From Cyanophora paradoxa CCMP329 (lineage: Eukaryota > Plantae > Glaucophyta): 64,000 nt of DNA. Where the stretch lies: positions 62,001 through 126,000 of the forward strand of contig QPMI01000662.1 in the NCBI GenBank assembly GCA_004431415.1, written 5' to 3'. Shown piece after piece: positions 4,379-29,731 of this stretch. Under the pieces are notes generated by a model. That model saw only the letters and a program-made list of their open reading frames with translations, did not search any database and was not told the origin of the DNA. Numbering within the stretch: position 1 is the first letter of the stretch; the number at the start of each line of letters is the position of its first letter. The translations under genes and the position numbers were made by a program.

Positions 4379-6585
4379 CTAGGAGGCTTCGGAGAGCCAG
4401 GGGTGGCCGAGGATCAGCTGGATCGACGGGCGGTCCCTGGGGTTCGGCTGAAGGATCCCCTGGAGCAGGTTCTGGGCGCTCTCGGAGAGCTTCTTCCCCG
4501 CGAAGATCAAGGCGATGTCGGCCCTGGACGGTTGCCCGCGTCAAGAACAGGCCGGGCGCTCGATCGAGGCGGGCAGCTCCAGCGCACGGGATGACGGGCT
4601 GCCCGAAGCGGCTCTCCTGGAAGGGGTAGTTCCCCGTGAGCATGAGAAAGAGCATGACGCCGATGGTCCACACGTCCACCGCCTAACCCCGGCCGCACAG
4701 CACGAATCAGCCCGCAGCCTGGCAGCTCGGCGTGCTATGAGTCAAGAAGCAGGAGCGAGAGGCCCACCTTGCCGTCGTATTGCGCGGCCTGGAACACCTC
4801 GGGCGGAGTGTAGCTGGGGCGACGTGGTAAGGGAGCGGAGCCCGGAGGGCGCGGAGCGGGGGCGCTCACAAGGCGCTGCCGATCGCCGTCTTGAGCTCGC
4901 TGCCGACGGAGCGGCTGAACCCGAAGTCTGCGGGGGCGCCGGCGGTCGGCGGGGGCCAGCGGGGGCGGGGCCCGAGGGGCGGGGGCACCGATGAGCTTGA
5001 GGGTGCCCGTGGTGGGGTCGACCATCACGTTCTCCAGCTTCAGGTCCCTGCCCGCCCCGCCCCTGAGCCGCCGCCCGCGGCTGCCGAAGGGAGCCCTGAC
5101 TCCTAGCCCCTAGCGCCCTTGGCTTGCCTGGCGCCTCATCGGGCTCGAGCCCTAACTCCTAGAACAGGACCCCTAAAATGCGAAAAAGCACCTGTGGCAC
5201 ACGCCGGCGGTGTCGTGCATGTAGCGCACGGCTGCGGGCGCGTCACGGCGGTGCTCGGGCGCCCCGCGAGATGCAGCGGGGCGGAGGACCTTCTGCGATC
5301 TGCCGGAAGTAGCGCCGGGCGGTCGCCTCGTCCAGCGCCGAGCTCGTCTCTGAGGGGCGCAGGCCGGGTCAAGCCCAAGCCGCCGAGGCGACGGGGCAGG
5401 GTGCGGACCCAGGGCGATGCCGGCGAGGCTCGCTCCGAAGGACGCGTCGATCGCGAACGGCTGCGCCTTCAGGAAGGCCTGGACCTGCCCGCGCGGGCGT
5501 CGGGCGGGGAGGCCAGCCGCAGGGGGCCCCGCAGCGGCGCACCGACTGGAGATACGCGCACTTCAGCGCCCACGCCGTCTCGAAGCTCGCCGCCTTGTCC
5601 GACAGGTCGTTGGGGGGGTACACGTCGACACGGACGGTCGCCTGCCCGGCGGCGACTGCGATGGGCACGTTGACGCGCTGCGGGGCCACCTGCGCACGCA
5701 CGGCGCATCTCAGAACGATAGGGGGCGGCAGGAGGGGGCCGGGGGCCGGGGGCGGCGGACGCGAATGAACGAGGCGACGGCGCGGCGGAGGGCGTCGGAG
5801 AAGGCGGGGGTGTAGCCGCCGGCGGGAGGGTTCACGGCGAGCTGCATGACGAGCTTCGGGCTCGAGATCTGAGGCCTTGTGAGGCCACGCGGCCCGCGGG
5901 GCTCGAGGGGCGGGGCGGAGCAGAAGAGGCTGCAGTACTAGTGCACCTTGTCGAACAGCTCGGTCCCTGGTAGAAACAGCCCGCGGGCCGTAAGGGGGCG
6001 AGCTGCTTTACAGCGCGTTGAATGGCGCACCCTCGACTCGTTCGAGGACGATGTACGCCTCCTGCTGCCCGGGCTGGCCCTCGACGAAGCGGTCGATGAG
6101 CTTCATGATGTTCGGGTGGTCGAGCTTTTGCAAGTTCTCAACTTCGCGCCGCAAGTACTCCGTATCAACGTGCGAGACATCGATCCGCTTGACCGCCACG
6201 CGCGCCCCGGTGCTCCTCTGCACCGCGTCGAACACCCTGCCGGCGACACGCGCGGCGCGTCACGGCAATTCGAGCAGCTCAAGATGCGATTGGAACAGGC
6301 GCACTCTCCGTAGGTGCCAGCCCCTACGCGCTGGCTGTTAGCTAAGGTGACAGTTAGGGACGAGAAGCCGCGCTCACCGAGACGCCAGCCAAGCACGTAC
6401 TCTTCATTGCGGATAGGCTGAAGCGATGAGCTCGGGGTCGTGGCCGTAGAAGAGCCCGACGTGAGCTCCTCATGAAACGATGTGCTGTGACCGCATCCCG
6501 CTGTTGCGCACTTCCGTGCTGTCAGATTTGATGCGCACTGCTGGCATTCACACTTCGGATATCGGCAGCGGCCGCTCTGCAGCAT
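4379..6585 (-). CDS. CAMK-group Ser/Thr kinase with N-terminal Cys/His finger and large alphaD-alphaE insert
   Basis: GAGTYG, VAVK, REVENLQKLDHPNI, GTELFDK, ARRYFRQIAEAVRYMH, CHR/DLKLEN, DFG, YTPPE, DVWTIGV, RPSIQLILGHPW. Stop at 4379-4381. Confidence 0.88.
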
Positions 6586-6953
6586 TCTGCATGCACGTCA
6601 CAGCTGAGTCACCTGACCGTGCTGCCCTACCCCTGCCGCGAAACATCGTACCCGGCTCGAAAGCGGCGCAGGTCTACCCCTGCTCGAACAGTGTACCCGA
6701 TTATTATTACAGTTAACACATACATCCAGGGGGAACAGCCAGTGAAAGGGCAGGTGAGAGCCGGATCGGAAAGAGGCTAAGCCGAGTTTGAAGGGCGAGG
6801 AGCACAGGGAAAGAGGCGATTGGAGGGGTATATCTTAGTATGGCCGTCTGACGGGCATAGGCACAGGGGCAGAAGCGATAAGTTCAGGGGTCGTAGGAGG
6901 GGCAGTGGAGCATAAGCTCGAAGCGCTAGAGCGCGCGGGGTGGGCAGCGGGGG

Positions 6954-7978
6954 TCAGACGTCGACGTAGTTGGAGGCCTCGTGGTCCATGGCGGAGGGCG
7001 CCGGCTCGTAGAGGGAGAGCAGCCCGTGCACCGCGCCGTGGAGCTCCGCCTGCCGGGGGAGGTGAGAGGGGCTCCCGCCGCCGGGCCCGGGCCCCGCGCA
7101 CCCGCACGTCGGCCGCCGTGACGCCCTGCAGCCGTGCGTGCTGCACGCCCTTCTCCTCGCTCTGCCGCGCCGCCTCGGCGGCCCCGCGCAGCGGGCGAGG
7201 GGAGGAGGGGCGGACCCGCTTGAAGGTCATGGAGATGCGACCGGCGTTCTCGTTGGGCCACGCGTTGCGCGAGAGGCGCAGCACGAAGGTCCCCGCCGCC
7301 GCCCCCCGCAGCGCCGCGTCCGCCTCCTGCCGGCCCTCCTCAGCGGGGCGGCTGGAGGAGGAGGGGGCGGGGGGCGGGGGCGCGCGCCTCGAGGGTCATG
7401 AATGCATTGCCGAGGCGCGTGCGCCCGCCCGCCTCCTCGAACAGCTCCCGCGACTGCCCCGGCGTCAGGCGCAGGGGCGAGGAGACGGGGCCAGGGTAGG
7501 GCGCGGGGCACCCCGCGGTACACGAGGGCGGCGGGGCAGAGCCAGAAGACGAACTGGCGGCACATCGCTTCCGGGTACGCGTCCCGCGAGGGGAGGCCCG
7601 CTGCGGGAGGGCGTGAGCGGCAGCCGGGGGCGGGGCGGGGGCGGGGGCGGCGGGCGGGGGCTCGCCGTTGGCGAGGAAGCTGCCGAACTCGGCACCGTCG
7701 GTGAGCCCTGGGAGGTCGAAGGCGGCGGCCGCCGCCTCCCGCAGCGCCCCCCGCGGCCACGTCCGCCCCCCCTGCCCCGAGCGTCGGCCGGGCGGGGGCG
7801 GCCTGGTCTCCAAGAGGGGGGCGGGGGGGCGCACGGCGGGCCCCGGCTGCGAGGGCTGCGCCAGGAAGCGCGCCCAGAGGGCGACGACGTCGGGGAGCAT
7901 GCGCAGCACGCGGTGCTCCCCGCTCTCCCGCGCGATCCTGCGCGGCCCAGCCCGTCAGGGGGCGGGAGCTAGACGCGA

Positions 7979-8027
<49 letters not shown>

Positions 8028-10007
8028 ACTGCTTGCGCACGCCCTCGACGAACGCCTCGATAAAGTCCCGCGGGCGGCCCGTCCGCGCGAAGTCCTCCGC
8101 GTACTGCCGCCCCGCCTGAGCCGGGCAGGCGGCCCACGCCGGGCGCCGGCGCCGCACCTGGCAGAGACGCTCGTCCCGCTCCTTGCCCTGCACCGGCGCG
8201 CTCTGCACGTAGCCGCTAACGAACCCCGAGATGACGGCGTCTGCAGGCGCGTCAGGTGCGGCGCCGGAGCGGGGGCGGGGCGGCGGGGCGCACGCTGGGC
8301 GCCCTGCAGGCGAGCCTCGATGCTCTGCAGCGCCGCGAGCGCCGCCGGGGCGCTCGGGCGCGCCGCCGGATCCCGGTGCCAGCAGTTCAGCAGCAGCTGC
8401 GGCGCCGTCAGCCACGTTGCGGGGCCGAAGAGCCAACGCAGCGGGGCCCACCTCGTAGAGCTGCTCGGGGCAATCGGCAGGGATCGGGTGCCGCGCCGCC
8501 CGGCCCTCCGGTGCAGCCGCCAGCGCGCTCGCGATCTGCGGGGGCGGCGCCGCATTAGGTTTCACGCCTTGGGGGGCGGGGCGGGCTCTGGGGCGGGCGC
8601 GCCTGGGCGGGGGAGAGGCCGTCGTAGGGGGCCCTGCGGGTGAGGACCTCGCAGCAGACGGTCGCGAAGCTGTACACGTCCGACGCCGCCGTGCACGGCC
8701 CCCCCGCGAGCACCTCCGGCGCTGCCCGGCCGTGAGGCGCGCGGAGCCCACGGGCACAGGGCGGGGCCGGCGGGGCGGACCCGTCCAGGGGAGGGAGCCG
8801 GGGGTCTCCGAGGGCGGCGCGGCCGCGCGGACGATGGCGGAGACGGCGGCGTCGGAGAGCCGCGCCGTGTAGCCCGTCTTGCTCCAGCTCAGCAGCACGT
8901 TCGAGCTCTGCGCCGACCCGTCGGGCCTCCCGGGGGCGCGGGGTGCGGCGGGCGGCGCGCCTTGAGGTCCCTGTGGGCGACTCCGAAGGCGTGCAGGAAG
9001 GCCAGGCCCTCGCAGACCTGTATGTAGGAAGGGGTGAGGGGGCGGCCGGGCGGGGCGGGGCGGAGTGCAGGTGGGGCACCTCCCGCATGAGCCGCACGCC
9101 CTCCAGCAGCGGCAGGTCGACCGCGCGGTCCCTCAGCACCCGCTGCAGGCTCGTGTCCATCGCCTCCTGCGCCGCATCGGTGTGAGGCGCCCAAAGGGGT
9201 GTGCAGCGATCGAGGCCGACCATCGCGATGCAGAGGGGCGCTTCCCGCGTGCAGAAGAGCTTCGGCTGCACGAGGCGCTCGTGCCTCAGACTGCACTGCA
9301 CGCCCAACTGCAAAATAGTTGAGGGTTAATGTTTGACGCACGCCCGACTTTTGGAGCCGCGCAAACCTCGTGCTGGATATCTCGCACCGCCGCCTCCGGA
9401 AGAGTCACAAAGATTTCCTTCGCCGCCAGGGGCTGTCCGAGGTACCTGCGGAGACATTTGATCAAACCTGAGAGTAAAAGCGCACCATGAGGCACGCACA
9501 CTGCCCGGGACACCTCGGCGTAGCTTCTGCGGGCAGCATTCGGCTCAGCCACGTGGGCGGAACTCGAGCTCTGCGAACGCTCACCCGCGACCTAATCTGG
9601 CGCTCCGATCGATGAGGAGATCCTTCCGATCTGCATGGGATGTTGATGGCCCAGCGTGAGGCCGGCCCGGGAGCCCGCATCCAAAGAAAGCAGCGTGCCG
9701 CACCGATCTCGCATCGCGCAGGATCAGCTGACGGCAAAGACGGGATCTGCTGCGCTCGTAGACGCAAAACCTCCAGCAGCTCGGGCCGCGGCGCATTCCA
9801 CGCAGGAGCTAGCATGTCGGTCAGCGGCGGCATATTGGACTTATAGCGAAGCAAATGATGCCACCGACCTTCCGTCGTCTCCATATATGGTGCTCGGGTG
9901 ACGCGGGTGAGAGTCCGGCCACCTGACACCGACCTGACACACCCGAATTCGAAATTGCGGTACCGGTCACGCGCAGCGCGGTTGAGTAGCTGCAGCCTCG
10001 GGCGCAT
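6954..10007 (-). CDS. Degenerate TKL kinase + helical linker + SH2 domain + Tyr tail (SHK-like); start uncertain
   Basis: LAAKE, VCEGLAFLH, AHRDLK/SSNVLL, SDAA in place of DFG, APE, SDVYSFATVC, CWHRDPAARP. SH2 core GTFVLRLSRNAWPNENAGRISMTFK..VQHARL. Ends ASNYVDV* (TGA 6954-6956). Confidence 0.8.
7980..8026. repeat. (GGC)n trinucleotide microsatellite, ~15 units, probably intronic
   Basis: Uninterrupted ggcggc run. Confidence 0.9.
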
Positions 10008-10088
10008 CTGGCTCGAACCTACGTTCGAAGATAAGCGGACGATTTGAAGCTAGCGAAACAGCGCCAGGAAGAAAGAAGGCTACCAGTC

Positions 10089-12798
10089 ATGCCGCCACGA
10101 GGCCTAGGGCCGCAGCGGCGCATGCGGTACGAGGTGGTCGGGGAGCGCCGTATGCCTTGCGGGTCACTTCTTCGGGTTGTCCTGCTCTCCGAGCACAAGA
10201 ACCCCCAGACGGGCGAAATCTTCTTCGTGGCGGGCCCGCAGGTGCCTTTGAGCGCATTGTTCTCATTTTAGCGCTTTCAGGAACGCCGTGACGCTCCCGA
10301 GCAGTCGAAGCAGGTCCTACTGCGAGTGGAGGTCAAGCCACGCGTCGGCTTGCGCGCGTCGGCTCCGCCGAAAACGTACATTGCCGAACTGCTAGACTCG
10401 AACGGCGCCGCGATGCAGACGTACACGCTCCAGCAGCAGAGCCAGAGGCGCGACGTAGTTCCACTGCAGACGTGGAAGGGGCAGGATGATTTTACCGGAG
10501 GCCCCGTGGTGCGCTCTCCCGTCTTCGCGGCCCGGTTCGCGTGCACGCGGCGCTGAACCAACTGCGGGGTGCACGTGGCAGACCGCGACGCTGTCGGAGG
10601 TAGCCGGGGAGTGGCGCTCGGCCAACGTGGAGTGCCGCATTGTGCCTCTGGCGAAGAGGCTCGGCTACTCCTCCCTCAGCATCCTCGTCCGCGCGCTGTG
10701 CACCCCGCCCGCCCCGTCGCAGCGCCGCCCGCCGCCGGACCCGAGCGGCGCCCGCCTGCAGCGACGCGAGCGTCCCTCCCGCGGACTGGTCCGTCCGCCT
10801 CGACGGGATCGTCACCGCGTCGAGGCACGACTGGGGCGGCGTGAGGGGCTGCCGGGTGCTCAAGCGCGGGCCTGAGGACGTGGACGAGGGGCCGCCGGGC
10901 AAGGAGCGAAGGATCGGGGAGGCGGGGGCCGACGCTGGGGCCCTCGCCGTGCTCCCTGCGGCCGATGCTGAGCTCCCGATCGCGATTCCGCTCGTCTGCT
11001 TCACCTGTGCGTACGTTCTCGAGGGAGAATCGCCCCCGCCCCCCTAACAGATCGATGTCGCGCAGTCACGGGAATTACCCGCACCATCCTGCCTGCAGGA
11101 AAGGCCCCGGCTCTGCTGCAGCTCTTCGTCACGCAGGTTCGGATCAGCCGCCTTGCCTTTCCCTCCGAAGCGCGGCGCCGAGAGGCCCCGCAGAACCCTC
11201 TTGGCGCACCTCTGCTCGGCGTCTGCATCAGCGCCTCTCTCACGCCGTGAGCCGTGCCCGCCCGCGCCGCCCGGCCCTCCCTGAAGCATCCCTCAGGTCG
11301 CCTGCGAATCCGAACGACTCGTCGATCGTGATCCCGTCGACTTCGATTTTTGCCGAACCCGTCAAGGACGGTGCCTGGGTGCAGAGGTGCCGCCCCAACC
11401 CCACGCGGGCCCCGCCGGCGCCCACCGCGGGGCGCAGCTTTGAGGTGGCGCGGCCGCCGGGGCTCTTCTCGCTGCTGGTGGCGGCGAACGGCGCGCTCGC
11501 CCCGATCACCGTCGACGAGGCCAGCCGGCAGGAGCGCTACGAGCAGCGCGTCGCCTTCTGTGCGCCCCGCGCGCTCTCCGCCCGCCCTTCCACGCCGCCC
11601 CGGCGACCCGCGCCGCAGGCTCCGTGAAGATTGAGAGCCCGAGCGCGGGCGCGGACGATATCCCCGGCCGCACGGTCAACCTGCAGATCGCCGTCGACGG
11701 GCCCGCCCCAGCCGCCCTAGGCCTTGCGCGCGCCGCCGACTCCCGCGCAGGCTCGAGGCCGCCCGAGCAGTCGGCGGCTTCCTCCGCGTCTTCCTCTCCG
11801 ACGGCCGGTGCGCGCCGGCTCCGGCCCCGCCCCTGCCGCGCCGGCCGACGCGGCGCAGCGTCCTGGACCGGCCGCTGGAGGCCGCCGCCGGCCTGCCGTC
11901 ACCTTCGAGCGCCCCGGCGAGCACTGGGCCAAGGCCCGCAGCGCCCCGCCCCGCCTCTGCGCCGCCGCTGCGCCGGCCCGGCCGACGGGGCTGCGCAGGT
12001 GGAGGTGGTCGAGGAGGTGCTGCAGCCCTTCGACGCCAGCGCGCGCATCGTCAGCGCCGTCCACTGGGACTCCGCGTGCGCCCCCCGCCCCCGCGCGCCC
12101 TCCGCGGGGGCCGGCGCGAGCCGCGGGCCCCGGGCGCTCGCAGGTGCGCGGTGGCGCTGGAGAACGGGGCGGCATTCGTCACCACCGCTCTGGACCGCAC
12201 CCTCCTCGAGGAGATGGGCGTCGCCAGCCAGCCCTGCGAAGGCGTCCCCCCTCCCTGCGCCCCCGCCATCTGCTCGCCCCGGGCGGACTTCGTGCTGGCC
12301 GAGGGCCTGGCGCCGGAGCTGGCGGCGGTGATGGCGAGCCTGCCGGCGCACATGGCGGCCCCGGCGCGCAGGGCCCCGCCCCATCCCGCGGCGCCTCGCT
12401 GCGCCGCGCCGCGAGCCGCGCGGCGAGCCGCGCCGCCCTCGACGTCGGCCAGGAGCTCGTGTGCGCGCCGGCCCCGCCCCGCCCGCCCGCCCCTCCCCGC
12501 GCCGGGCCGGGCGAGCGGGCGGTGCAGGCACGCGGCGACCGTGGGCGACGCAGACCTCATCGACCTGCTCTTCGACGACGCGCTGGCGGCCCCGCTCGAG
12601 CCGGCGCTGCTCGAGCGCGCCGCGACCGCCGCCGCCGAGGGCCACCACCCGCTCGCCCTCAAGAGCCTCCTCGAGCGCGGCGCCTCCCGCGCCGGCGCCC
12701 TCGAGGCCTGGCCGGCCTTCTTCGAGCCCCTCATCCCCGACGAGCTGCCCCGCGCCCTCTCCCGCTCCGCCAGCCGGCCCCTCGCCGCCCAGAACTAG
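10089..12798 (+). CDS. Hypothetical multi-exon protein: beta-rich N-terminal domain and C-terminal ankyrin-like repeats; middle exon junctions unresolved
   Basis: Coherent exons LLRVEVKP..YIAELLDSNG..CRIVPLAKRLGYSSLSILVRA..GIVTASRH. C-terminus HAATVGDADLIDLLF..AAAEGHHPLALKSLLERGA (ankyrin-like). Stop TAG 12796-12798. Confidence 0.6.
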
Positions 12799-12999
12799 GC
12801 CCTCAGGCACAGGAAGTTCATGCCTCGACTCGGGCGAATGTCGTTCAATGTCGGACAGTCGGCGGGGCAAAGTGTATGCTGTTTTGTTCGAATTCGTTGA
12901 GTACGCAGCACCATGTGATTCCAGGTCATGCCCTCGAGCTCGCGATCGCTGACATGGCGAGCTAGGCCCTAGGTCGAGCTCGCTGACATGTACATGTAC

Positions 13000-15900
13000 A
13001 TGGCGAGCTGGCCATGGATATCCTCAAAGTCGTGTGTGAAGCAATTGCAACTGCAGCTATAGCTAGCCGAGCGTCGAGTGCGCATGCGCATGCGAGGAAT
13101 CAGGTGACCTCTGCGGGGTACGTATACGGGGCGGGTGCAGGGATACGACATCAGCTTTGGTGCTGCTGTGGTGCAGCTATAGCTAGCTGCTGTTTCAGAT
13201 GTCCGCAAACTATATCAATCCGGGCGAGCTTCGGGACGTTGTCGCTCTGCGGAACGTATTGGAGAGACGGCCAGAAGTTGTGTACGGCGAGCTGAGCGAT
13301 GTATCGAACGCACCGGCGGGTATCGTGCCGGTTGCGCCGACCGCACCGGCATCGCCCGTCGCGCCGCCGGTCATCGCCCCAGCGCCCATCGCATCAGCGG
13401 CGTCGGTTGTCATAGACGCGCCCCAGATCCCATTTCAACTCATCCTTAACGCAACGAAGTGAGCTGCGGTCGCGCTGGTCTTGCCGCGACGCGCGCTGAC
13501 CAACGATATCGATCAAAGTAACTTCTTCAAGAGAATCGGAGAGGGAAAGTTCGGTACGCGTGTATCTGCTGGCTAGCGTTATATTTGCTCACGTGTACTT
13601 TGTTTCAGGGGTCGTCTACCAGGGCAAGCTGTCATGGGAATCCAAAGAAGTCGATGTAGCTGTCAAAGGTCCGTCTGGGCGTGTGTGGTGCTCGCCTTGC
13701 GACCAACGGGCGCCCCGACAGTGCTCAAACCTCAAAGCGAAGACGAGGCACGAGCTCGAGCCGCTCAAAGCGAACAAGAGGCACGCAGAGCCAGGGAGCT
13801 CAGGATCAAGGCACTCAAGGCCGAGGCGCTCGAAGTAGAAACACTTCGCCAGTTGGGCGCTGACAACGTCAACGTCGTCGTTTGCATCGGCTTCTGCATC
13901 GTCCCCCACGATGTCCCCGTACGCGACATATCCAAGGACTCGCTCTGCATCGTGTACGAGTACGTAGGGCCCAGCATCGAGGATGTGCGCGCGCCCCCCG
14001 CGCCCCCACCCTCCTTCTTTCCTCGGCCATGGCCGACGCGAGCCCCTCAGCTCTGGCTCCGAGATGAGAAGCACCACCCGCTGCCGCCGCCCCCTCCCAG
14101 CTTGCCTGCGGCTTCACCGCCGACCTGGGAGCAGCGCGTCCACATTCTGACTGAAATTGCGTGCGCTCGACCTTCTCATATTGCGTTCTGAGCTCAGGAA
14201 CCTCCTGCAGGAGCGGATTGAGCTTTCTCCACTCGGTTCGCGCGGTGGGCGACTTGCGGCTTCATGCTTACGGCGTATCTGCAGCAAAAGATTATTCACC
14301 GGGACTTCCGGAGTGCGAACATCCTCCTGCGCAGCGACATCGGCCGCCCGGGCGCCGCAGTGATCGCGGATTTCGGCCTGTCTGCTCGGACCGATGGTGC
14401 GGTTTGCGGATGTGCGGGCATGCGTTATGTTCCGATCGGGTTCCGCCTCTAGCAGAATCGCAGGAGGTGTCAGCCCAGAGGAGCAAGAGGACCGCGCCAG
14501 TTGGGTACACCGACCCAGAGTACTGTGCGCCACTCCCCTCGTCCCGCTCCTCTCCCCCCCACCCCCACCCCACCCCCCCACCCCCACCCCCACACCCACC
14601 CCACCCACCCCGCCCAACCCGCACCCTCCACTTCCTCAGCCCCCCCCACCCCCCCCCCGCCCCGCCCCCACCCCCACCCCCCCACCCCCCACCCCACCCC
14701 CCCAACCCCCCACCCCCAACCCCCACCCCACCCCGCACCCTCCACTTTCTCAGCCCCCTTTCTCCCCCCCCTCCCCCGCCTCATCCTCTACCCTCGCCCC
14801 CTCCCGCACTCCCCACCCCCTCTCCCCACGCGCGCCCCATTCAAGGCTTCCTGCCCTCCTCCACCCACTTCCCCTCCCGACTCCAAAGCTTCGCCCGTTC
14901 ACGTTTTCCATCCTCAGTGATCTCGGGCAAATTCACACCAGAGAGCGACGTGTTCGGGTTCGGCATCCTGGTGCTGGAGATGGTCACGGGTCTGAGGGGG
15001 TACGTGAAGGAGCGCACGCCGCGCTCCCTCGTCCAGATGCTGCGGGTCCGCACCCCCCGCGGCCGACGCCCATCCGCCCTGACAAGGGGCCCCTCGCCTG
15101 TCGGCCAGGACAACTGGGAGCACGAGGACTGCTGGCGCATCATGGCCGACAGGCTCGCTGGCGAGCCCCCACGGCTGATTGTGGAGTTCCTCTTGGGGGT
15201 ACACCTTCCCCCGCTCTCCCCCCGTCCTCTCCAACCGACCGGCTGCGCGGCCGCAGCTGGCAAAGGCGTGCGTGCAGCTGCACGGGAAGGACCGCCCGAG
15301 CTCTCAAAAAGTCCACGAGAATATGGCGAGCCTTTCGAGGCAGGACGTCATCTCTAGGACGCAGGTGCGCCCTTCCCTCACGCCCCCGCTAACCCCCTTC
15401 CCCCCTAAACCCCCTTCAACGCCCCCCCCCCCCCCCCCCCCCTGCCCTCCCCATCCCACCCCACCCGCACCCTCCTCCCGCCCTCCCCTCCCCACCCTTT
15501 CCCGCCCCACACCCGCCCACCCACACCCATCCCACCCCCCACCCCCACCCTGCGCCCCCCGGCCCCCGGCCCCGACCGACCGGCTCGAGCAGGAGGTTTT
15601 CAACAAAAACCGCAAAGAGTACCGGTGCGGCCGGCGCGCGCCTCCGGCGGCGCCGTAGCGCCGACTGAAGCGAGCGCACGCGCCCCCCTCAGGAAGAAGA
15701 ACGACATATACGCGTTCCAGTCCGAGGCCGCCCCGACGTTTGGCCCTTACGCCGTGCGCAACCTTCCCGTCCTCCCACTTTCTCTGAGCTTCCGCGCAGG
15801 GCCGGCAAGGCGGTGCGGCGAGATGTGGCTTGAGCCGCCGGCCCCGCGGAGCTGACCGCTCCCGCCCAAACCCGCAGACTGGGTCGTGACGTCGTGCTAC

Positions 15901-16841
15901 CGCGAGGAGGGGAAGAGGGCCGACGTGTACGCAGTTCGTGCGCTCCGCCCCGCCCCGCCGCCGCCGCCTCGTGGTGATCGGCCCCACGCAGCCGACGAGG
16001 TGCCCCTCGAGCACGCCCTCTCCTGGCCGCCCTGCCGCCCCGGCTTTCCCTGACTCTCGTCTCTTCTTTCCGCGTCGCGCAACCAGAAATTCAAGAAAGT
16101 GCTTGCGGTGCCTGCTCGTGCCGGTAGTGCTCAGAGCTCACTCGCCCGGCGTAGACGTACAAGCCCGTGCCCGGCCAGAAGAACATCTGGCGCAAGGAGA
16201 CCACGGTACGCGCTCAGCTGTTCGTCGGGACGTCGGGGCCGGAGCGGCGCTGAGCGGGGGACGGCAGGTGTTGGCGGCACAGATGAACGAGCCCTTTGCT
16301 GTGGTGCACGCCCCTTCGCCTGGCGCGACGTCTCCGCTCTTAGCTAAGCGTCGAGGGGTCTCCAGATTTCTCGCGAAGGCTACAGCGAGGGGCGGTAAGC
16401 CCCGCGCCGCTCGCGCCCTGCGCGGTCGCGCCGGACCCTTAACAACAGCCCGCTGCAGCCCCGGGGACTGGCTGGCCGGCACAGACGTCACCCAGCAGGC
16501 TCGCCGCGGCCCGGTCGCCCCCCTCTCGCCTCCTGACCACCCCGCAGTACGTGATCGAGGCAGGCAAGTTCGAGGAGCTCTACGAGCCGGCAGACGCGCC
16601 GCGCCGCGCGAGCTCCGCCCAGGCGGAAGAGCCGCCCGGACAAGCCGGGCGGCCGGAGCCGGGGTCGGTCAAGCAGCCGGCGCCAGGCGCGTCGGAGCCA
16701 GCGGGGCAGCCAGAGCCAGCGGGACAGCCGCAGCCGGGGGCGGCCTTCGGGGCGGGCCCGGCCGTCGTCGTCGGCCTGGCGGCCGCCGCCCTCGGCTACC
16801 TCGCCGGCCTCGCGGGGACGGGAGGCGGGCGCGGCGCGTGA
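13000..16841 (+). CDS. RLK/Pelle (IRAK)-like kinase with C-terminal tandem PGDYG-like repeats and hydrophobic tail; start uncertain (13000-13199)
   Basis: IPFQLILNATN/NFFKRIGEGKFG/VVYQGKL, VAVK, IVYEY, TWEQRVHILTEIA, IIHRDFRSANILL, IADFGLS, GYTDPEY, SDVFGFGILVLEMVTG. Then PGDWLAG..YVIEAGKFEELYEP and AVVVGLAAAALGYLAGL before the stop at 16841. Confidence 0.85.
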
Positions 16842-18440: not shown

Positions 18441-18515
18441 CACCTCCTCCCTCGTGTAGGCGCCCTCAGGGCCTTGCCGCCCGTGCCCCCTGAGCCCCTC
18501 CTTCTCCACTGCGCG
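18441..18515 (-). pseudogene. Orphan decayed fragment of the kinase-SH2 linker exon at 19494-19559
   Basis: cacctcctccctcgtgta, cttgccgcccgtgcccc and agcccctcc(t/c)tctccactgcgcg are shared in the same order, with small indels. Confidence 0.75.
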
Positions 18516-18899: not shown

Positions 18900-21800
18900 T
18901 CAGTCGATCCCGGCAGGCCCGGGCACGTTGACGTAGACTTCGGGGCTCTTCTGCGCGTAGTACGGGGAGGCGAGCGCCGCCTGCGCCCCGCTCAGCTCCT
19001 GGATGTAGCTCTGCGGGCAGCGGGCGATCGCGCGAGCGTCAGTCGGGGTCGGCGCCGGCGATCCGCGCATGGACCCGAGCCTGCGCCGGCGAGGGCGCAC
19101 GCGGACGTGGGCGCTCGACGCCGGTTTCATGCGCGCGTGCTTCAACTCGCCCTGCGCCTCCCGCGGTCAACGGCGAGGGGAGAGCGCGGCTCCGAGGCCC
19201 GGGGCGCACGGCGCGGTTCTTGAAGGTGACGCAGACGTAGCCGGCGGACTCGTCGGGCCACGGGCGCCCCGAGAGGCGCAGCACGAAGGTCCCCGGCGGG
19301 CTGACACCGAGCAGACCCTCGGCCTCCTGCCAGGAGAGGAACGCGTCGCCCAGCTGGTTCCGCGCCCCCGGCCGGAAGACGTCCATCATCTGCGCGGCGA
19401 GCCGGCCCTCAGCGGCGTCGGCCGACGCTCCAGGCTCGATCCCACCTCCTTGTACGTGCGGGAGGCGGGCAGGACCCAGCAGCAGAAGAGCATCACCTCC
19501 TCCCTCGTGTACGCGCTCTTGCCGCCCGTGCCCCTCAGCCCCTCCCTCTCCACTGCGCGAAGGCGGCCCTCAGCCGGCCGCGCCGTCCGCAGCGCGAAGG
19601 AGCGCGGCGCACGGAGGTCGAAGATCTTGGCGAACTGCTCGTCCGTGATGCGCGGGAGCTGGAACTCGCGCTCCGCGGCGGCGAGCAGCGCGGCGCGCGG
19701 CCAGCGCGGCGGCGCGCCGCCGGCCCCGCCCCGCCCCGCCTCCGCCTCCACCGGCGTGTCCATCACGCGCTCCCACAGCTGCACCACCTCCGGCAGCAGG
19801 CGGATCTGCCCCGCGCCCCGGCGGCGTCAGGCGGGGCCTGCGCGGCGGGGAGGGCGCGGCGGCGCACCGCTCGCTTCTCCTTCCACTCCTCTTCCGTCTC
19901 AGTCCCTTCGGCGCTGCGGTGCAAGGGCTCAGGCCGAGCCGTCGCGGGGCAGGCGCGGCGGGAGCAGGCGGGCCTCGCTGCGGTGGGGAGGCGGGCGAGC
20001 AGGCGGGCTACGAAGGTGTGCAGGAGCTCGCCGCTCATCCGGCCCCGCGCGTAGCGCTTTGCCACCTGCGCGAAATGCCCCCGCGATGGGGATCGTCGCC
20101 GGGGGCGGGGGCGGGGGCCGAACCTCGAGGAGGCGCTGCGCCCGCCCGTGGGCCGCCGTCTCCCCGGGCCCTGCCCGCTCCCGCAGGTACCCCTCCACGT
20201 CCTCGTCGATCAGCCGCACTGCGCCGCGCGCCCCGTGGGCCGGCGCGGCGGGCCCACGGCGATGGCGCGGCGCGCACGGGCCGAGGAGCGCGCCGCCGCC
20301 TCGATCTGCACGAGCTCGTCCCGCGCCCCGGCCGCCGTCGGGCGCCGCGCCGGGTCCACCTGCCAGCACCGCAGGAGCAGCTGCCGGCCCTCGCCCTCAG
20401 ATCCGGATTTGGCGGGGCCTGAGGCGAGGGCGGGGCGGGGCGGGGACCTCCTTGAGAGGCTGGGGGCATTCGACGGGGAGCGGGTGGGGCGGCTCCCCCC
20501 GCTCGACGATGCCTCGCACCCGCTGGTAGAACTGCCGCCGCGGGGCCCTCAGCGGCGGGCCGCCGCAACGGGGGGCGGCGGGGGCGTGCCACGCGGGAGT
20601 CGCCGTTGAAGGGGAGCTGGCGGGTGAGGACCTCCCAGCAGACGGTGGCGAAGCTGTACACGTCCGACGCCGCCGTGCACGGCACCGCGCCCGCCTCGTC
20701 CCTCTCGTCGAACGCCAGCACCTCCGGCGCTGCCCGGCCGCGGGGCGCGAGGTTGGCGCGCGCGGGGGCGGTGGCGGGCGGCGGGGCGGCGCTGGCACCG
20801 GCCCAGAAGCCGGTGCCGCCGGAGCCGCCCTCGGCGGCGAGGCGAGCGAGGCCGAAGTCCCCGAGCTTGCAGGCGAAGCGGTCGCGGCCCTCCCACCGCA
20901 CCAGCACGTTCAGGCTCTGGCCCCGCCCCGCGCTCGGGGTTGGGGCGGGGGCCGGGGGCCGGGGCCGGGAGGGCGCCACCTTGACGTCGCCGTGGACGAC
21001 GGGTTCCCTCGCCCCGTGCAGCGCGCACAGCCCCTCGCACACCTGCCCGCCCGCGCCGCCCCGCGCCGGCGTCAGCGGCCGCCCGCGCCGCCCCGCCGCC
21101 CCCGCTCAAACGACGGCGCGCCTCGCGCATGACGCGGAGGCGGTCCTGGAAGCCGAGGGGCACGTCCTCGACCCGCGCCAGGACGCCCTTCCGCAGGTCC
21201 CCGTCCATCCGCTCCTGCCCCCACCCGGGGCCGTGAGCTGCAGCTGCAGCCCGAGGCGTCTCGAGGGCGGGGCCTGGCGCGGCGACGCACCATGACGATC
21301 TGCACGGGGGGCTCCATGCACGCGTACTTGATCTGCACGATCCGCTCGTGCCGCTGCCGGAACTGGATCGCGAACTGCGCGCAATTGCAAAACTGTAATT
21401 TATAAGCTTCTCGAGTGGCCCCCCAGGAGCGCCGGCGGGGGCAGGCGGGGCGGGCACCTCGGAGACGAACTTGTAGTAGTCGGGCTTGAACTCCTTCACG
21501 GCCACCCGCTCGTGCATGTACCTGCCGCCCGCCCCTCAGCCCGGCGACCCCCCAGGCCTGCAGGGGGCGGGGATTGGGGCGCACACTCCCTCGTACACGT
21601 CCCCGAAATTCCTGCGCGGGGCGGGGCTGAGCGCCAGCTAGCGTGGCGCCAGGCAAACGAGCTCGAGGGCGCAGGCGGGTGCGGACCCTCGGCCGAGGAC
21701 GCGGCTCCTGTTGACGTGCAGGTGCTGCCGGTCTGCGCGGCCCGCGCGCGCACGCGAGCGGCGCAGTCAGCTGGGGCAGGCGATTGGTCTCGCAGTAAAC

Positions 21801-24800
21801 GACGCTCGCCGATCGAGGCCGCGGCGACGAGCACGTCGGTCGTATCGATGAGGGGGCTGCGGGAGGCGCCGCCCGTGCACGTGGGCGAGGTGGGTATGAC
21901 GACCCCGAGCAAGGCGGCCGCGGGGGCAGCGCCAGGCGGCGCGGGGGCAGCGCCCGGCGCGGCGGGGGCGGCGCCGGACGACGCCGAGGCGGGGGTGGCT
22001 GCGGGGGCGGCGCCGGCCGAGGCGGGGGCATCGGCTTCGCCGGAGGCGGCGTCGAGCTCGAGGGGCACGTATACGAAGCCGGGGGAGGTGACCCAGCGCG
22101 CCGGCTCGGCGAGGAGGTGGGCGAGGGGGAGGACCTGGCAGGCGCCCGTCGCCGCGTCGAGCTCGAGGACGGCGCGCACGGCGAAGGCGACGCCGCGCGC
22201 GAGGGCGTCGCCCGTGAGCTCGTGGGGGAGCAGCTCGCGGTCGCTGCCCCGCCCCGCGCGCGGGTCGAAGCGGAAGGTCACCGTCGGCTTCGGCTCCGCG
22301 GCCGCGTGCACGGGCACCTCGGGCGCCGAGTAGTACAGCGACCGCGACGACCCCGAGAGCCCCGACTCCTCGTGATCGGACGCGGCGGCGAGGGACTCCG
22401 TCGCCGCGAAGGCGGGGTCCACTATGGAGCCGGCAGCGTCCATGATCAGAATATCCGCTGGCGACGGCGGTGCCGGCGACGCGCTGGAAGGCAGATAGTC
22501 CCGCTCGAATCCGGCTTCCTCGAGCTTCATTTGTCTTGTCGCCTGCGCTTGTGCCCCAGCACCCTTGACGGCCTCGACGTACGTCGACGCCTGCGAGATT
22601 GTCATATGTTTCGAAGGAAAAAAAGCTGATCACAAGATTTCGAGAGGCACGCACCTCGATTTGAGGGAGGGACCGGAATCGAAGAAGGCCGTGCAAGCCT
22701 GAATTAACAAATATCTGGCGTGCACGTGTACGTAGAGTTTGAGCCATGCCGAGATAATGCGGCCCCGATGAGGCGCACCATTACTTCTTCGTGCGAATAA
22801 AACGGCGGCACGCGCGCGTGCACGACTTGCTCGTCCTGCCACGCGTAAGTGCAATGTCGACGCGCGCGCTCATGATCACCTAAGCTCTTAGCTTCGAAGC
22901 TGAGGAGCTCCAAACGATGGCGGGGCCCGGGCCGGGGGCTCACCATCGGACATTTGTACGTGACGATGGGATCGCCGGCGTACTCGTTGGGCCAGGGGCG
23001 CGAGGAGAGGCGCAGAACGAACGTGCCGGGGGTCTGATCGGCAATCCTCCGCTCCGCCATCTGCACCGGCACCGTGATTGGTGTCACATCAATCCGCTGC
23101 CGCGTACGACTGGTTTATAATTACCTCCAAGCTGAGGAATGCGTCGCCGATATACAAACTGTGCTTTGGTCCCCTCAGGAAGAGATCTTCAAGCTGCGGC
23201 CACGGGCGTCGTGGCGGGCAGGAAATCAGAGAGGGGAGGGCAGGGGAGGAGCGCGCTGAGGGAGGGGGGTGAAGGCGGGGGCGGAAGAACCTGGCGGTAC
23301 TTGCGGGCCGTCGGAAGGAGCCAGAAGCAGAAGTCGCGGAGCTGGTCCGCCGTGTAGGCCTCCTGCTGCGGCAGCTCCGCTGCGTGTCCCCGGTCCGGTC
23401 AGCCCCGCGCGGAGGACGCGCGCGGGCGCCGATTGATGCGAGACGCGCCGACTGCGAGAAGATCGCGGAATTTGTCGTCGGCGAGGGAGGCGAAGCCGAA
23501 CTCCTCGCCGGCGACTCCGAGGAGGGCGGCGCGGCTCCAGCGGGGCCCCTCCGGGCCGGCGCCGCTCGGGGCGTCGAGGCAGCGCGCCCACAGGCGGACG
23601 ACTTGAGGAAGCATCTCCAGGACCCGCAGCTCTCGTTGCAACGCGTCGCGATCGTCTTCCTTTTCGTCCGTCATCCTGCGCGCTGTTCAGTCAATTATAA
23701 TGCAGGGAAAATCTGTATACAAGGGCCTGACGCGCCGACGCTGCACGTCCGCGACAAAGGCGGTCAAAAGCTTCTCGGCCTGCGGGCTCCGCACGAACTC
23801 TTCAGCCACCTGCAGAGGACCAGACCCGTTGGCAACCGCTGCAGTAAGAAAACATCTGCAATGCAACGCGGACCGCACGAAGGCGGGCCGCCCGGACCCG
23901 GACGCCTTCTGCGCTGTTGCCGAACGCGAGGCGATCTCGGAGGAACGATGCTGCGTGCGACTTAATGGAAGAAGCTGCAGCGGGGCGTCAGCGGATCACA
24001 GCTGGAATGCGTTCATCTGGAGTCGTGCACATTGCTGCCGGGCGTCGTCGTCGAGTTGGCGGAGAATGCGGTAGGCCTTCCCGGCCGTGGGGCGGCCCGA
24101 GGGATCGCGGCTCCAGCAGCGCGCCAGCAGCTGCTCGGGGCGTCGATGAGGGCGGAGAGACCGCGGAGCGCGCGGGCCTCTCGGAGGGCCTCGGGGCAAT
24201 CCGGCGGGATCGGGTGGGGGAGGGATCCCTCCTGGCCGGCCTCCCCGAGGACCCGCCCGACGATCTGCCCCCCCACGAGATCGGTACCGTTAACGGTGTT
24301 TGGGGAGACTAGATCTAGAGCGCTAGCGCAGCCGCTGGCAGCTGCAGCGGCACCTCTTCGCGGCGGAGGCCGGCGTGGGGGAGCTGGCGGGTTAGGACCT
24401 CCCAGCAGACGGTCGCGAAGCTGTACACGTCCGACGCCGCCGCGGGCGTCTGCCCCGCCATCACCTCCGGCGCTGCGCGGCTGCGAGATATGCGGGCCGG
24501 CGTTTTTGTTCTATGCAGGGAGAGGTGTAGCGGACCCATCCAGGGGAACGAGCCGCGGCAGGGTGAGATGTGGCGCTCGGGTTGCGCAGAGCTGGGATCA
24601 AGCTCATTATCAGCCTGCGGCTGGGCGATTGTTGCGAGACCGAAGCCTGAAATCTTGCAGGTGAGATGGCTTGGCTTTTGCTCTTCCTTCTTCACTAGCA
24701 CTTCCAGGCTCTGCGCAGAGCAGTCGACAAGTGGCACCGTCCTGTCAATGATGCGCAAATTTCACGTATACGTACCTTTAAGTTGCCGTGCACGACGGGC

Positions 24801-27800
24801 TGCGCGGCGCCGTGCAGGGCGCACAAGCCCTCGCAGATCTGCCGTGAGGCGCCGTTAGCGGCGACGGACGAGGAGCGGTCAATCGCACGAAGGGCGAGAT
24901 GGGCGGGCCTCGCGCATGATGCGGAGGCGGTCGGCAAGGCTCAGCTCGATTTCGGGCTGGTTCAGCACTGCCGAGCGCAGGTTGCCGTCCATCCGCTCCT
25001 GCGGGTCGGGTTAAGCACCATCGATATCATCCATGCATATGCATGCAACCATCCGTCATCGAGCAGCAGACCATGACGATTCTGAGGGGAAGCTGCTGCG
25101 TCTGGGCGCCCTTCAGCTGTACCACGCGGGCGTGCCTGAGAGAGAACTGAACGAAGAGCTGTGGGGGCGTTGGGGCGATTGCAAAGAAGGAGCACAGCGG
25201 GAGATGCGGAAGAGCGGGCCTCGGTACCGAACTCGGCGTTGTAGTACTCGAAGAACTCCTTGACGGCGACCGCTTCTTGCATGTACTCCCCCTTGTACAC
25301 CGTCCCGCTGGACCTGTCGAGCGACACTCATGATCAGCCACGGTCTACAGTACAGCATCATTGGAGCGGACCTGCGCCCGAGCTTTTCGCCGACTGCGAG
25401 GAGCTGAGGGTCTGCGTGCGCGTCACCACGTGCGCTGAGCGGCAATTGCAACTTGCCAGTTGGGAGATTCGCACCGATTTCGCCGAGGATTGCAGCGTCG
25501 AGGCGGCCATCCGCGTCTGCACGCAATCGAGTGTGGGCTCGAGTACCGCGAAAACAGTTATAAGGAAAGGGATGACCAGGGCCGGGAGGATGGAGCTGGA
25601 GCTGGAGCTCAACCGCCGAGCTTGATTTCTCCGGATCGGCACTCTGCAGCAAACTCTCCCACAGCAAACTCTGCAGAGCGATGTAACGAGCTGATTGCTC
25701 GAGATGCAGCGTCAAGCTGGAGCACCTCGGGCTCGAGCCCCCTAGAAATGATTGGTTTCGACGGTGTGCCCTGGACGTCGAGGCCGAGTGCTTTCGAGCT
25801 TGAGAGCGGAATGGTCAGCGCTCTATCGAGCCTTTCTTCCAGGTCCGCGTAACGATCGGCGGCATCGGCGAGGAAGCCGCTGAGGACGAAGGCGTCCGAG
25901 CCCCACGTCAGCGGGCACAGCTCCCCGCTCACCTCTGACGCGCATTTTCAATTGGTTCGGTGCGCGAGAGGTAACAAAAATAGAACGAATACGCACCAGG
26001 AAAGTTCAACGTAAGAGCCCCGAATTGTATCTCCAGAACTCCGCATCGCGCGAGAGCCTCCGCGCCCTGCTTGTCTAAAAGCTTCAGCCCCTCGGCTGCC
26101 CAGCGCGGGATAGCAAGATCGACGATGAAAGAGCCCTCTGCAATTCTTTGTACGGCCTGCGAACGATCGCGAAGTTTAGACGCATAAAGCAAGATAAAGA
26201 TTGCAATGCATGAGAAAGGTGGAAACAGCAATATCAATATGAGATGGCACCTGGGACAGCGACCGGGACTGGGATCGAGTCGCTAGGGTATAGAACGAAT
26301 GCGATAGGTTCTTGAAATACTGCGCCGCGCGCATAGACCTGGTAAAACAACAACGCGACACGTGCCTCGAACGCAATTAAGAGGTTCTCACCGGCAGAAT
26401 CGCGCACTTTGCGGCACCCAAAGCCAGTTTCATCACGCCAAAAGGATCAACCAGAGCCGCAGGACTTGTTCCTTTGATCGAAACAACCTGGAATGTGCCA
26501 TGGCCAGTTGGTTGAAGTAACGATATCGATGCGAGCAAGGGAGATTCGGCGACCTCGGTGGTGTGGAACAACGATTCGGCGCTGACGGGAGGTCCGGAGG
26601 GCGATCTGAATAGGATGCTACTCAAGAATGACCGCTGCTTTGACGCAGCCGCTGCAGCTGCATCCGCCATGTCTTTCAGCTCCTTTCGCAATTTCTGCAC
26701 AGATTCTCGTACAGCGGGCCTCTCATTGGCCTCGAAGTCTGAATAAAACATATCAGATTTATTCGCATGTGCAGATCTAGACAACAGATCGCTAGAAACA
26801 TACTGGTACCTCGACGGGGGAGGAGCCCGGAGATGTAAAGAGATGCCCATAGCTCGGCAGCCGAACTGACGTTCGGCTCGCTGACCTGGGCACGCGAAAG
26901 CAGGATCGACATCGCAATATCAATGAAGCCGCGACGCAACAGTTTTACGTATACGTACCCGCAGTATCCGCGAGAGAACGCCCAGGACGACGGGACAAGA
27001 TCGAATGTCCGAGCGGGTATCTCGGACGTGCTGGATCGCGTTCCGAATTTCTTCTGCATCACGCTGTTCACCAGCCATTCTCAATGATCTGCAGCTGCGA
27101 AGGATCCGGATTGACAATTCGTCAGACAGATTCCAAAAAACAGACGGCAGCGGTGCGGTGATACCCGGAGAGCATCGACAGAGCTATTCTCCCGACGGCA
27201 TAGACATCGTCACACACGCCCGTGGATGGTGCAATCTGATAACCTTGAGAGTTGAGCGATGAGCAAAAGTGTTCAAAGCTGCGTATGCTCACATCTGCAG
27301 CAGCGTCGAATGCTGGACGCTCGAGGCTTGCGTCCTTCAGTCGCCTGGCGAGGCCAAGGTCCTCAAGCATGTACCTGCACGCTGTGATTTCAGGAGATCG
27401 ATTTCATAAATTCAACCTGGGAAATCGCACTGGGGGCAGCCATCGAATGGCGATCGCGACATGAGGACCGCAGAGGGGGATATGCGCTCATGGGCCAGTT
27501 CGGCGTCCGTGTGTATGTGATGCAAGATAAATGACATCTGCGCTGAAACATGAAATGGATTTGTGCTGTTAAACGACAACCACACCTGCTCCAGGAAACA
27601 AAGGACGTCCTCCACATCGCATCGGCTGCGGCGACTCAGAACCTGCTGCACGCTAATTACAAAAAGTCGGTCAGTGATCTGGAAGCAGGAAGCTGCGAAC
27701 GAAAACCTATAGCTACCTCTCTCCTCGAACGCGGGTCTTGACGACGGCGTTGCGCTCGGCACACGCGTCCCACAGCGTGGGGACGCCGTAGCAGCGGAAC

Positions 27801-29731
27801 CAGGCGGCGTAGGCGAGCGCCCGCTGCGCCGCCCGCCACGGGTCCGGGGGCGCCTCGCGATCGTTCTCCTGCCTGCGGCAGAGCCCGGCCCGCTTGAAGA
27901 CTTCCAGTCGAGCGCGGGGCTTGCGGTGTCGCTTGGCGGCAGCACGCGACGGGCGCTGAAGAGCGCTCCAGTCTGAAGCCGCCGGCAATGCTCTTTTGTC
28001 TCCGGCTGGTACTGAGGCGGCTGTCAAAAGCGAATCTATAATGATTACTAGCTAGCTACATTACGATAGCCAGCTATTACGAGCGAAAATATGGCCACTT
28101 GAAAGAGATCTAGAGAAAAAATGTCATATGCACCTCGCGGTGCTGCTGGATGAGGTGCTCGAGGCCACCCTCCGGCCGCACATCCGGCCCGAAGATCTCA
28201 GAAAATCGCATGTCGCCGCGGACAGCGAGGGGGCGCCTGCAGACGTCGCAGTCGGGGCCGTCGCCCTGAGGCTCCACGTCATTCTCCACCGCGCAGTTCG
28301 TGCAGGTATTTTTCTGCTTGGGCGTGAGCCATAATGGCCATCGCGGCTATCATAGAAGTGGCTGAGAAAGGCCGCACCGGGATAATGCTTGACGTGACAG
28401 GGTCCCGCGAGTTCAGCAGACGAGACAGTGCAGAGGCGGTGCAGGTTGAACTCTCCCCCTCTGAACGTTCGTAGTCGGAGCAGGAGGGCCAGCGCATGCG
28501 CAAGCCCCGCGGAAGGCTGTCGAAGACGGCTAAGCGCGGCTCGAGATAGCAGATGACGATTCGCTTGTTTCCGCTGTAAGCATAATGGAACTCCTCTGCA
28601 AAAGCAGTTAAGTATGTTCAGCGCTGCGATAACGCCGGCGCAAGCGTAGATCGTGCAAGATGCGGTCGAATTCGAAGTCAAACGCACCGCCGCAGTACTG
28701 CGAAGCTGCCGACCGCCTCGACGCAAAGAAGAGGAGGTGCGTGCTCCCCTCAATGCCTCTTGCGACTGCAGCGCGGTCGCGGTCAATAGATGACCGGCTT
28801 GAAATCCAGGGGCCGGGTACAGATATCGATACGATCGTATCTCTGTGTGCGCACTCTCATCCACCCAACGATCACCTGTCCGGTCCATCGTCATGAGCCG
28901 GCTGGAGATTCGAAGAAACCTCAAGCACATGCTTACCGTCTTCCAGCTGTTCGACGTCGAGCCTGTTTTCGCGTGTAATTATAAATTTGAAACACGCCAC
29001 GTAAATGTCTAAAGCAGAGCGGGCACCAGAAATGCGCGCCGGGGTCCTGCCTCTCCAGTTCGCTCTTGATGCGCGCCATGTTGTTGCTGTCCGAGCGCGA
29101 GTAGCTGATGAAGACCCTGACTGGAGCTTGCGAGGGCCAGGCCCGCGGCCGACGTTCGCCGGGCGCCGTCCCCGTTCTGCATTCTTGCTGCTCGCCCTCG
29201 GTCGTCGGCGGGGGCTTGGCGCTGGCTTCGCGCAGCGCCCTCTCGAAGGCATCCACGCGACCGCTGTACCCAGGAACGCCGGGAAGCCCGAATTCGTAGA
29301 GCTTTGTGAACTGCAGAGGGAATGAACAAGGAGGTTTGCTTTCCTGCAAGGATTGCGAGAGATGTTATTATGTCGCTTACATTAATGCCGCTGATGCGCA
29401 TGCTGAGGCCAGGGGCGTTCTGTAAAACCAGATTCTCATCTTCGAGCATAATGACAAAACAGTGGGCGTTGCTGATCGCTAATCGCGTGCAAATCAGGAT
29501 CAGCTGAAAAAGTAGAATAGCATGCTAGTGTTCGAATTCCGCGTACGCATGCGCACCAGCCATGAGCTCATTCACGAAATCTTGATTCTGCACCGACCGA
29601 ACAGATGTGCATACGAAGAAGATGCGCTGACTGGTCCCCGTTTGTGAAGCAGCACCGGTACCGGTGCCGGATCCATGAATACGCCCGCCAGCTACGGCGA
29701 CTTCGAATTCCCCTGCCGTTCCCGCGGCCAT
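18900..29731 (-). CDS. Giant multidomain signalling protein: (TIR)-TIR-Zn ribbon-pseudokinase-TRADD-N-like-pseudokinase-SH2-kinase-SH2
   Basis: Manual splicing at GT/GC-AG sites keeps frame from the intact TIR (VFISYS..WLD..IARGIEGS..SQYCGEEFHYA) through CxxC..CxxC, HERISPSAVL/EDLGLAR, IAEGSFIVDL, HGNLK/SGFG, GTFVLRLS, GRGNFG/VAVK/HGDVK/DFG/APE and GTFVLRLS to EVYVNVPGPAGID*. Single-transcript status is inferred. The first exon junction and one junction near 27950 are ambiguous. Confidence 0.72.

Follow-up and report, generated by a model that had tools for sequence, protein, structure and literature searches.

Predicted STAT-type SH2 modules with conserved tail tyrosines, fused to kinases and probably to a TIR domain, at a signalling locus of Cyanophora paradoxa

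The window analysed here is a 64,000-nucleotide stretch of the genome of the glaucophyte alga Cyanophora paradoxa CCMP329 (contig QPMI01000662.1, positions 62,001 to 126,000). As a preliminary description of this DNA had proposed, it holds five consecutive genes for putative signalling proteins, named here A to D and the giant gene, whose models lie between 4379 and ~30100. Two of them match database models on tig00021582, gene B being g22617 (P0002) and the giant gene g22621 (P0001); both database entries are from Cyanophora paradoxa and were retrieved by an exon-level SH2 profile search. Exon chains built from the coordinates gave open frames for the giant gene and for genes A, B and D. Their introns are short and of the GT-AG or GC-AG type, and the chains depart from the database models only in one junction and at the 5' ends. 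Profile and structure searches used single exons or database proteins; on single exons, Pfam missed the SH2, ankyrin and Ig domains. All six of the kinase or pseudokinase domains described earlier were recovered: the giant gene contains three, and genes A, B and D contain one each. Gene B and the giant gene are laid out as follows.

6954-9890, reverse strand: gene B (g22617, P0002), a TKL kinase followed by a helical bundle and STAT linker, an SH2 domain and a YVDV tail
7102-7453, reverse strand: SH2 domain of gene B, with betaB Arg, a WP..xAG insert and H-A-R in betaD
6954-6968, reverse strand: YVDV tail of gene B, its Tyr 68 residues past the SH2 Arg
18900-30097, reverse strand: giant gene (g22621, P0001), 2,292 amino acids, from the exon chain, the database model and spliced joints
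28480-29115, reverse strand: TIR_2 domain in five exons, with a Glu in the catalytic position at 28593-28591 (Pfam E 3.5e-19)
28134-28313, reverse strand: zinc-finger exon (CxxC...CxxC), RanBP2/NZF-like by eye, called from its Cys pattern only
26810-27955, reverse strand: pseudokinase 1, CAMK/PknA-like, catalytic residues lost (Pfam E 1e-4)
25997-26487, reverse strand: probable TRADD-N-like domain (NCOA6 clade), from Pfam NCOA6_TRADD-N, Atlas and a structural model
24031-25411, reverse strand: pseudokinase 2, of TKL type, HGN replacing HRD and SGFG replacing DFG, with RNA joints
22579-23974, reverse strand: first helical/linker-SH2 module with an internal YVE tail, Tyr at 22581-22579
20278-21732, reverse strand: kinase 3, an intact non-RD TKL kinase with HGD, DFG and APE
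18900-20218, reverse strand: second helical/linker-SH2 module with a terminal YVN tail, Tyr at 18935-18933
18441-18515, reverse strand: orphan exon copy downstream of the giant gene, 83% identical to part of giant-gene exon 19552-19446

Three SH2 domains, each followed by a YV[D/E/N] motif, had been reported from the window, and profile and structure comparisons both confirmed them, though all three fall under the Pfam cut-off. A profile built from three SH2 exons matched 42 PDB sequences, 41 of which are SH2 proteins, with Dd-STATa at the top. A nine-sequence linker-SH2 profile also placed Dd-STATa first, across both linker and SH2 (E 1.8e-7 over 130 amino acids). The AlphaFold2 (AF2) model of the gene B module (predicted local distance difference test score, pLDDT, 85) resembles STAT cores and the Cbl TKB domain; it aligns with Dd-STATa at Z 12.5 over 166 residues, and its template modelling (TM) score is 0.68 to the Arabidopsis SHB cluster versus 0.55 to animal STATs. 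In this structure comparison a helical linker domain is packed ahead of the SH2 fold, whose G-x-F-x-x-R motif contains the betaB Arg. This Arg is invariant, the betaD His and the basic residue after it (His-x-Arg) are kept in all three window modules, and the WP..xAG insert is common to these modules and a plant-type SH2 protein. The YVD, YVE and YVN tails stand 68, 65 and 65 residues past the SH2 arginine. Since a Y-[VI] tail occurs 63-69 residues past this arginine in six of the six kinase-fused modules of the genome, the tail is a trait of the family. STAT transcription factors combine their SH2 with a DNA-binding domain in one chain; in the window SH2 proteins none was found, and kinases are carried instead. 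Taken together, sequence profiles and the modelled fold identify the window SH2 domains as STAT-type linker-SH2 (STATL) modules, which are predicted to read phosphotyrosine.

The genome contains at least eight STATL-SH2 genes, six of which lie on other contigs: three kinase-SH2 genes, two SH2-only pieces and P0025 (at least six in all). The three local kinase-SH2 units are 39-45% identical and have several exon boundaries in common. These units are copies of one module, but their divergence shows that they are not a recent tandem array; the family is dispersed, and by sequence the local units are ancient paralogues within it. Unit 1 groups with P0006 of another contig (55% identity, bootstrap 98). 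The C-terminal ~80 residues of P0005 and P0006, which lie on different contigs, are identical, owing to recent duplication or assembly redundancy. Word-based homologue searches returned proteins of the same organism only and are uninformative on longer or shorter relatives, while searches of limited reach found this architecture in no other organism.

Transcript evidence for the giant gene was sought in the region 22520-28500, where three RNA-like runs were compared with one DNA run. GT/GC-AG joints were present in the three RNA-like runs and absent from the DNA run, which matches the window without differences. One spliced contig joins pseudokinase 2 to the exon of the TRADD-N-like domain. 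A second contig runs from the first SH2 into the exon beginning with the YVE tail, showing that the two kinase-SH2 units belong to one gene; two separate genes meeting at 22600 were ruled out, as the spliced contig bridges them. Further upstream in the gene, one contig spans the TIR exons and the zinc-finger exon, the length of X3 record 12 fits the exon chain, and pseudokinase 1 is covered by a spliced contig (X3 record 11). Three of the 14 RNA-supported introns are of the GC-AG type (23676-23735, 24839-24908 and 25159-25219). Loose contig ends match both the gene B sequence and a splice junction within the second unit.

The N-terminal part of the giant gene extends beyond 29731, as the database model begins upstream of this position; one exon maps to 29994-29884. 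The catalytic type that had been assigned to its TIR was supported by sequence: the TIR_2 profile scored 69.9 bits against a curated cut-off of 28, and the best PDB match was the bacterial Cat1 TIR (E 0.0019), with the conserved TIR Glu aligned. The position of the catalytic Glu was inferred from this alignment. The TIRs of Thoeris and Argonaute systems also matched, though weakly. A relative with 36% identity to the TIR was located at L002:1918-2181 in a Blastocatellia metagenome-assembled genome. The metagenome scan gave one bacterial false positive (L001). By eye, 29420-29994 (reverse strand) resembles a second, degenerate TIR, and neither Pfam nor pairwise comparison confirmed this. The zinc-finger exon had no significant Pfam match, and pseudokinase 1 matched DAPK2/PknA in PDB at E ~1e-3. 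The TRADD-N domain of the preliminary description received moderate support. Pfam NCOA6_TRADD-N matched one exon weakly (E 0.095), with no match for the whole region, and Atlas gave a score of 0.90 with 179 shared features, its ten best family matches all agreeing. The low-confidence model (pLDDT 53) gave ACT/ferredoxin-like matches at Z 4-5, with TRADD not listed.

Next to the giant gene, at lower window coordinates, lies gene D, which encodes a kinase of the receptor-like kinase (RLK)/Pelle type.

13199-16841, forward strand: gene D, RLK/Pelle-type cytoplasmic kinase of 633 amino acids with a repeated motif, then a hydrophobic tail anchor at the C-terminus; open chain
14297-14320, forward strand: catalytic loop of gene D, HRDFRSAN, in which Arg replaces the Lys of Ser/Thr kinases
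14497-14499, forward strand: Pro of gene D at the position of PKA Thr201, as in tyrosine kinases

The family call, already made in the preliminary description, was supported by the subdomain IX exon (14920-15045), for which the best 31 PDB sequences are IRAK4 and plant receptor-like kinases, IRAK4 leading and plant RIPK and BAK1 coming next. The gatekeeper Tyr and RLK/Pelle family motifs are also present, while the catalytic-loop exon alone is not family-specific. According to published work (PMC1420674), tyrosine activity is predicted when the Thr201 position carries no Ser/Thr. The catalytic-loop Arg is also found in Roco4, so it is not diagnostic alone and was rejected as proof of tyrosine specificity. 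Together with the Pro, it makes gene D the best candidate, judged from its residues, for a writer of tyrosine phosphorylation. The P+1 loop holds Tyr, not Trp, and the first match is IRAK; gene D is not a member of the TK group, and it may work like one. In its C-terminal region (15593-16841, forward strand), two copies of a short motif are spread over microexons of 8-13 nt and followed by the hydrophobic tail anchor. The motif resembles the bacterial PGDYG-type domain, and the C-terminal pieces had no match in Pfam or PHROG. At the start of the gene (13199-13225) there is an N-Y-I-N motif like the SH2 tail motif, which by a rough estimate would occur by chance about 1 in 4 times. Seven RLKs have been reported in the species (PMC10868138), and the chance of finding one beside one of eight SH2 genes is ~0.4-1.3%, calculated post hoc.

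Gene C lies between genes B and D.

10089-12799, forward strand: gene C, head-to-head with gene B; possible DNA-binding-like N-terminus, Ig-like (TIG/filamin-type) folds and an ankyrin-like end

Its exons had no direct match in Pfam. The best match per exon with P0025 (g10177, tig00000158), a protein that combines ankyrin, RING and STATL-SH2, was too weak, and a collinear exon chain was used instead. Against residues 324-515 of P0025 this chain scored 94, compared with 46 +/- 6 (maximum 68) for the null and 61 for the best unrelated protein. As an Atlas lead, this P0025 region has Ig/TIG/filamin-like features. Gene C had been described as a possible Ig-fold/ankyrin transcription factor; the Ig-like part of that description stands by homology, whereas Pfam did not confirm the ankyrin and transcription-factor calls, the ankyrin being found in the homologue P0025. 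Genes B and C are head-to-head, ~0.2-0.25 kb apart, and since gene C is homologous to the N-terminal half of P0025, the pair appears to mirror roughly the layout that is fused in that protein. P0025 also has two possible, unconfirmed DNA-binding-like regions, which make it a candidate for the transcriptional output of the pathway. Given the tyrosine-kinase-type substitutions of gene D and the homology of gene C to a STATL fusion protein, the neighbourhood is probably non-random.

The remaining gene of the five, gene A, has no visible link to the other four.

4379-6585, reverse strand: gene A, CAMK/AMPK-like Ser/Thr kinase with an N-terminal Cys-rich finger; 14 exons, 428 amino acids, open exon chain
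5409-5868, reverse strand: insert in kinase A, 111 amino acids in three exons, in frame by exon phases, between helices D and E

Pfam Pkinase matched one exon of gene A (E 5e-11), and the subfamily was read from motifs. The insert had no match in a Pfam search and looks SEA/ferredoxin-like by eye. The flanking genes, which had been called housekeeping genes, fit that description by eye (TBC GAP, WD40, FKBP-like and glycosyltransferase). A 0.7-kb duplication (30345-31057 and 34143-34830, 90% identical) spans, by eye, the start of the FKBP-like gene, and an EFHC1/Rib72-like gene with EF-hands was seen by eye at 44365-46822 (reverse strand).

In architecture, the local units are closest to Dictyostelium Shk1-5, which also have a TKL kinase (here assigned from Pfam PK_Tyr_Ser-Thr and motifs) followed by an SH2. 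This likeness is one of domain order. The Cyanophora SH2 is of STAT type, with Dd-STATa as best PDB match; unlike Shk1-5, it has the plant STATL WP..xAG insert, is structurally nearer to plant SHB and is followed by the conserved Y-[VI] tail, and two of the units are, by the gene model, fused with a TIR, a zinc finger, a TRADD-N-like domain and pseudokinases. The plant STATL proteins (Arabidopsis SHA/SHB) have the same linker-SH2 fold (TM 0.68) and signature insert; they are not known to contain a kinase. In Cyanophora, unlike in plants, the module is present in at least eight genes, is fused to kinases and keeps its tail tyrosine, whereas the tyrosine sites of plant STATL are poorly conserved (PMC8331091).

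Animal JAK-STAT signalling likewise has a pseudokinase, a kinase, a STAT-type SH2 and a tail tyrosine in one pathway. However, in Cyanophora no FERM domain or TK-group kinase was seen, the order differs, and writer and reader would be in one chain. The pseudokinase-kinase-SH2 order noted earlier is not JAK-like but arises from two Shk-like units fused in tandem, and a JAK orthologue was rejected because a Pfam scan of P0001 did not give the order FERM-SH2-pseudokinase-tyrosine kinase. A TLR-type pathway, with which the preliminary description had compared the locus, was not supported either. TIR and a Pelle-family kinase are both present, as in TLR/MyD88/IRAK and plant RLK/Pelle signalling, but the TIR is a TIR_2 whose best matches are of bacterial NADase type, no ectodomain and no death domains joining TIR and Pelle were seen, and gene D has the Arg and Pro substitutions; Pelle kinases were already reported in Cyanophora. 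Among the NCOA6-clade TRADD-N proteins of sponge and other invertebrates (Kaur et al. 2021), TRADD-N is similarly combined with kinase or SH2 effectors in Amphimedon (PMC8195603). They start with Death-like domains, whereas in the alga a TIR, a zinc finger and a pseudokinase come first. By membership, then, the locus is not a JAK, STAT or TLR pathway; on domain content it resembles Dictyostelium Shk and STAT with a plant STATL module.

These features could be explained by an Shk-like phosphotyrosine switch built from plant-type STATL modules that clusters a TIR domain, a proposal that we regard as an even call. A kinase would phosphorylate the Y-[VI] tail, and the phosphorylated tail would bind the SH2 of a partner, by analogy with STAT dimers. 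The writer could be the unit's own TKL domain, acting with dual specificity, or the membrane-anchored Pelle kinase D. Two SH2/tail units in the giant protein would permit higher-order assembly, which may cluster the N-terminal TIR_2 and switch on NAD+ cleavage, as in analogous systems. The zinc finger, the pseudokinases and the TRADD-N-like domain would form a scaffold or supply the input. Genes C and D would probably, not certainly, act in the same pathway, and its other parts (kinase-SH2 genes, a STATL DNA-binding protein) would lie on other contigs. The output would most probably be defence or cell death. We are doubtful of a more specific version, a complete phosphotyrosine circuit for immunity with some of its parts encoded here, in which a Pelle kinase that converged on tyrosine specificity would write the tails, plant-type STATL-SH2 modules would read them and polymerise the giant protein so that its TIR becomes an active NADase, and a STATL/Ig-fold factor would carry the signal to transcription. 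If true, it would be an independent analogue of JAK-STAT/TLR signalling and a view of plant STATL before tyrosine loss.

Several observations weigh against the proposed switch. No joint between the zinc finger and pseudokinase 1 is among the RNA joints listed, RNA contigs continue past the database acceptor at 27955 with no splice, and none covers 27520-27719. Given the missing joint and the read-through, the TIR part may be transcribed separately. The fusion of TIR to kinase in one protein is nevertheless likely from the gene models, because the frame is open and both database isoforms join the halves. Over the 5' half (25412-29731), the GC content of the giant gene is 0.55-0.59 versus 0.76 in its last unit, and at third codon positions (GC3) it is 0.60-0.76 versus 0.96. 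The low GC3 of the 5' half (0.60-0.64 versus 0.92-0.96) fits relaxed selection. The alphaA basic residue is absent from all three window SH2s; some SH2s may use a betaD basic residue in its stead. In the gene B kinase, DFG is replaced by DAA. At the positions that bear on specificity, the kinases fused to SH2 show the usual Lys and Ser/Thr, a combination that is compatible with dual specificity (PMC1420674). The frame of gene C has a 1-nt frameshift near 11897 and a second unclear stretch at 12360-12460, which may be an assembly error or a broken gene.

A phosphotyrosine switch could also be real and serve growth, motility or stress instead of immunity, with the TIR as a scaffold. The closest functional analogues, Dictyostelium Shk1 (PMC1420674) and STATs (PMC3670131), are developmental regulators, and most family members (P0002, P0004, P0006 and P0039) have no immune-type domain. 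On the other side, a TIR_2 that keeps this Glu is, like a TRADD-N-like domain, typical of conflict and immune systems (PMC8195603), and we consider the non-immune role possible but unlikely. It also seems unlikely that the five genes form one co-regulated innate-immune island working as a unit. Five signalling genes stand in a row amid housekeeping-like genes, a rare RLK adjoins SH2 kinases, kinase 3 is non-RD, and the arrangement of B and C recalls P0025. Against this, six of the eight STATL-SH2 genes are elsewhere, the mean intergenic distance of 770 bp makes close spacing common, and kinase A is not linked to the rest. The writer/reader module that had been proposed for the locus is thus plausible, given the SH2 pocket, the tyrosine tail, the Pelle substitutions and the homology of C, but it is not self-contained, as at least six STATL-SH2 genes lie on other contigs. 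Quite improbable, finally, is a hotspot of domain shuffling, where old kinase-SH2 paralogues met unrelated kinases and a drifting TIR/pseudokinase/TRADD-N segment and the proteins do not cooperate: the missing joint and uncovered stretch, the low GC and GC3, the orphan exon copy, the frameshift in C and two dead kinases would all suit it, but the frame stays open over ~2,300 codons, both database isoforms join the 5' half, the low-GC part is cleanly spliced, the TIR Glu, Cys pairs and tyrosine tails are kept, and the divergence of the local units is not that of a recent array.

No papers on SH2 or TIR proteins in Cyanophora were found, subscription journals being outside the search, and the SH2 domains described here are missed by Pfam thresholds. 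It is still an open question what the SH2 of plant STATL reads and whether plants at any time had a phosphotyrosine circuit based on SH2 (PMC8331091). In Cyanophora, a relative of plants that branched off early and can be cultured, the STATL module keeps its tail tyrosine and is fused to its likely writer, which makes this question testable with peptides and purified domains. If confirmed, phosphotyrosine-driven assembly coupled to a TIR enzyme in one chain would be a new link, as would a Pelle kinase with tyrosine-kinase-type residues.

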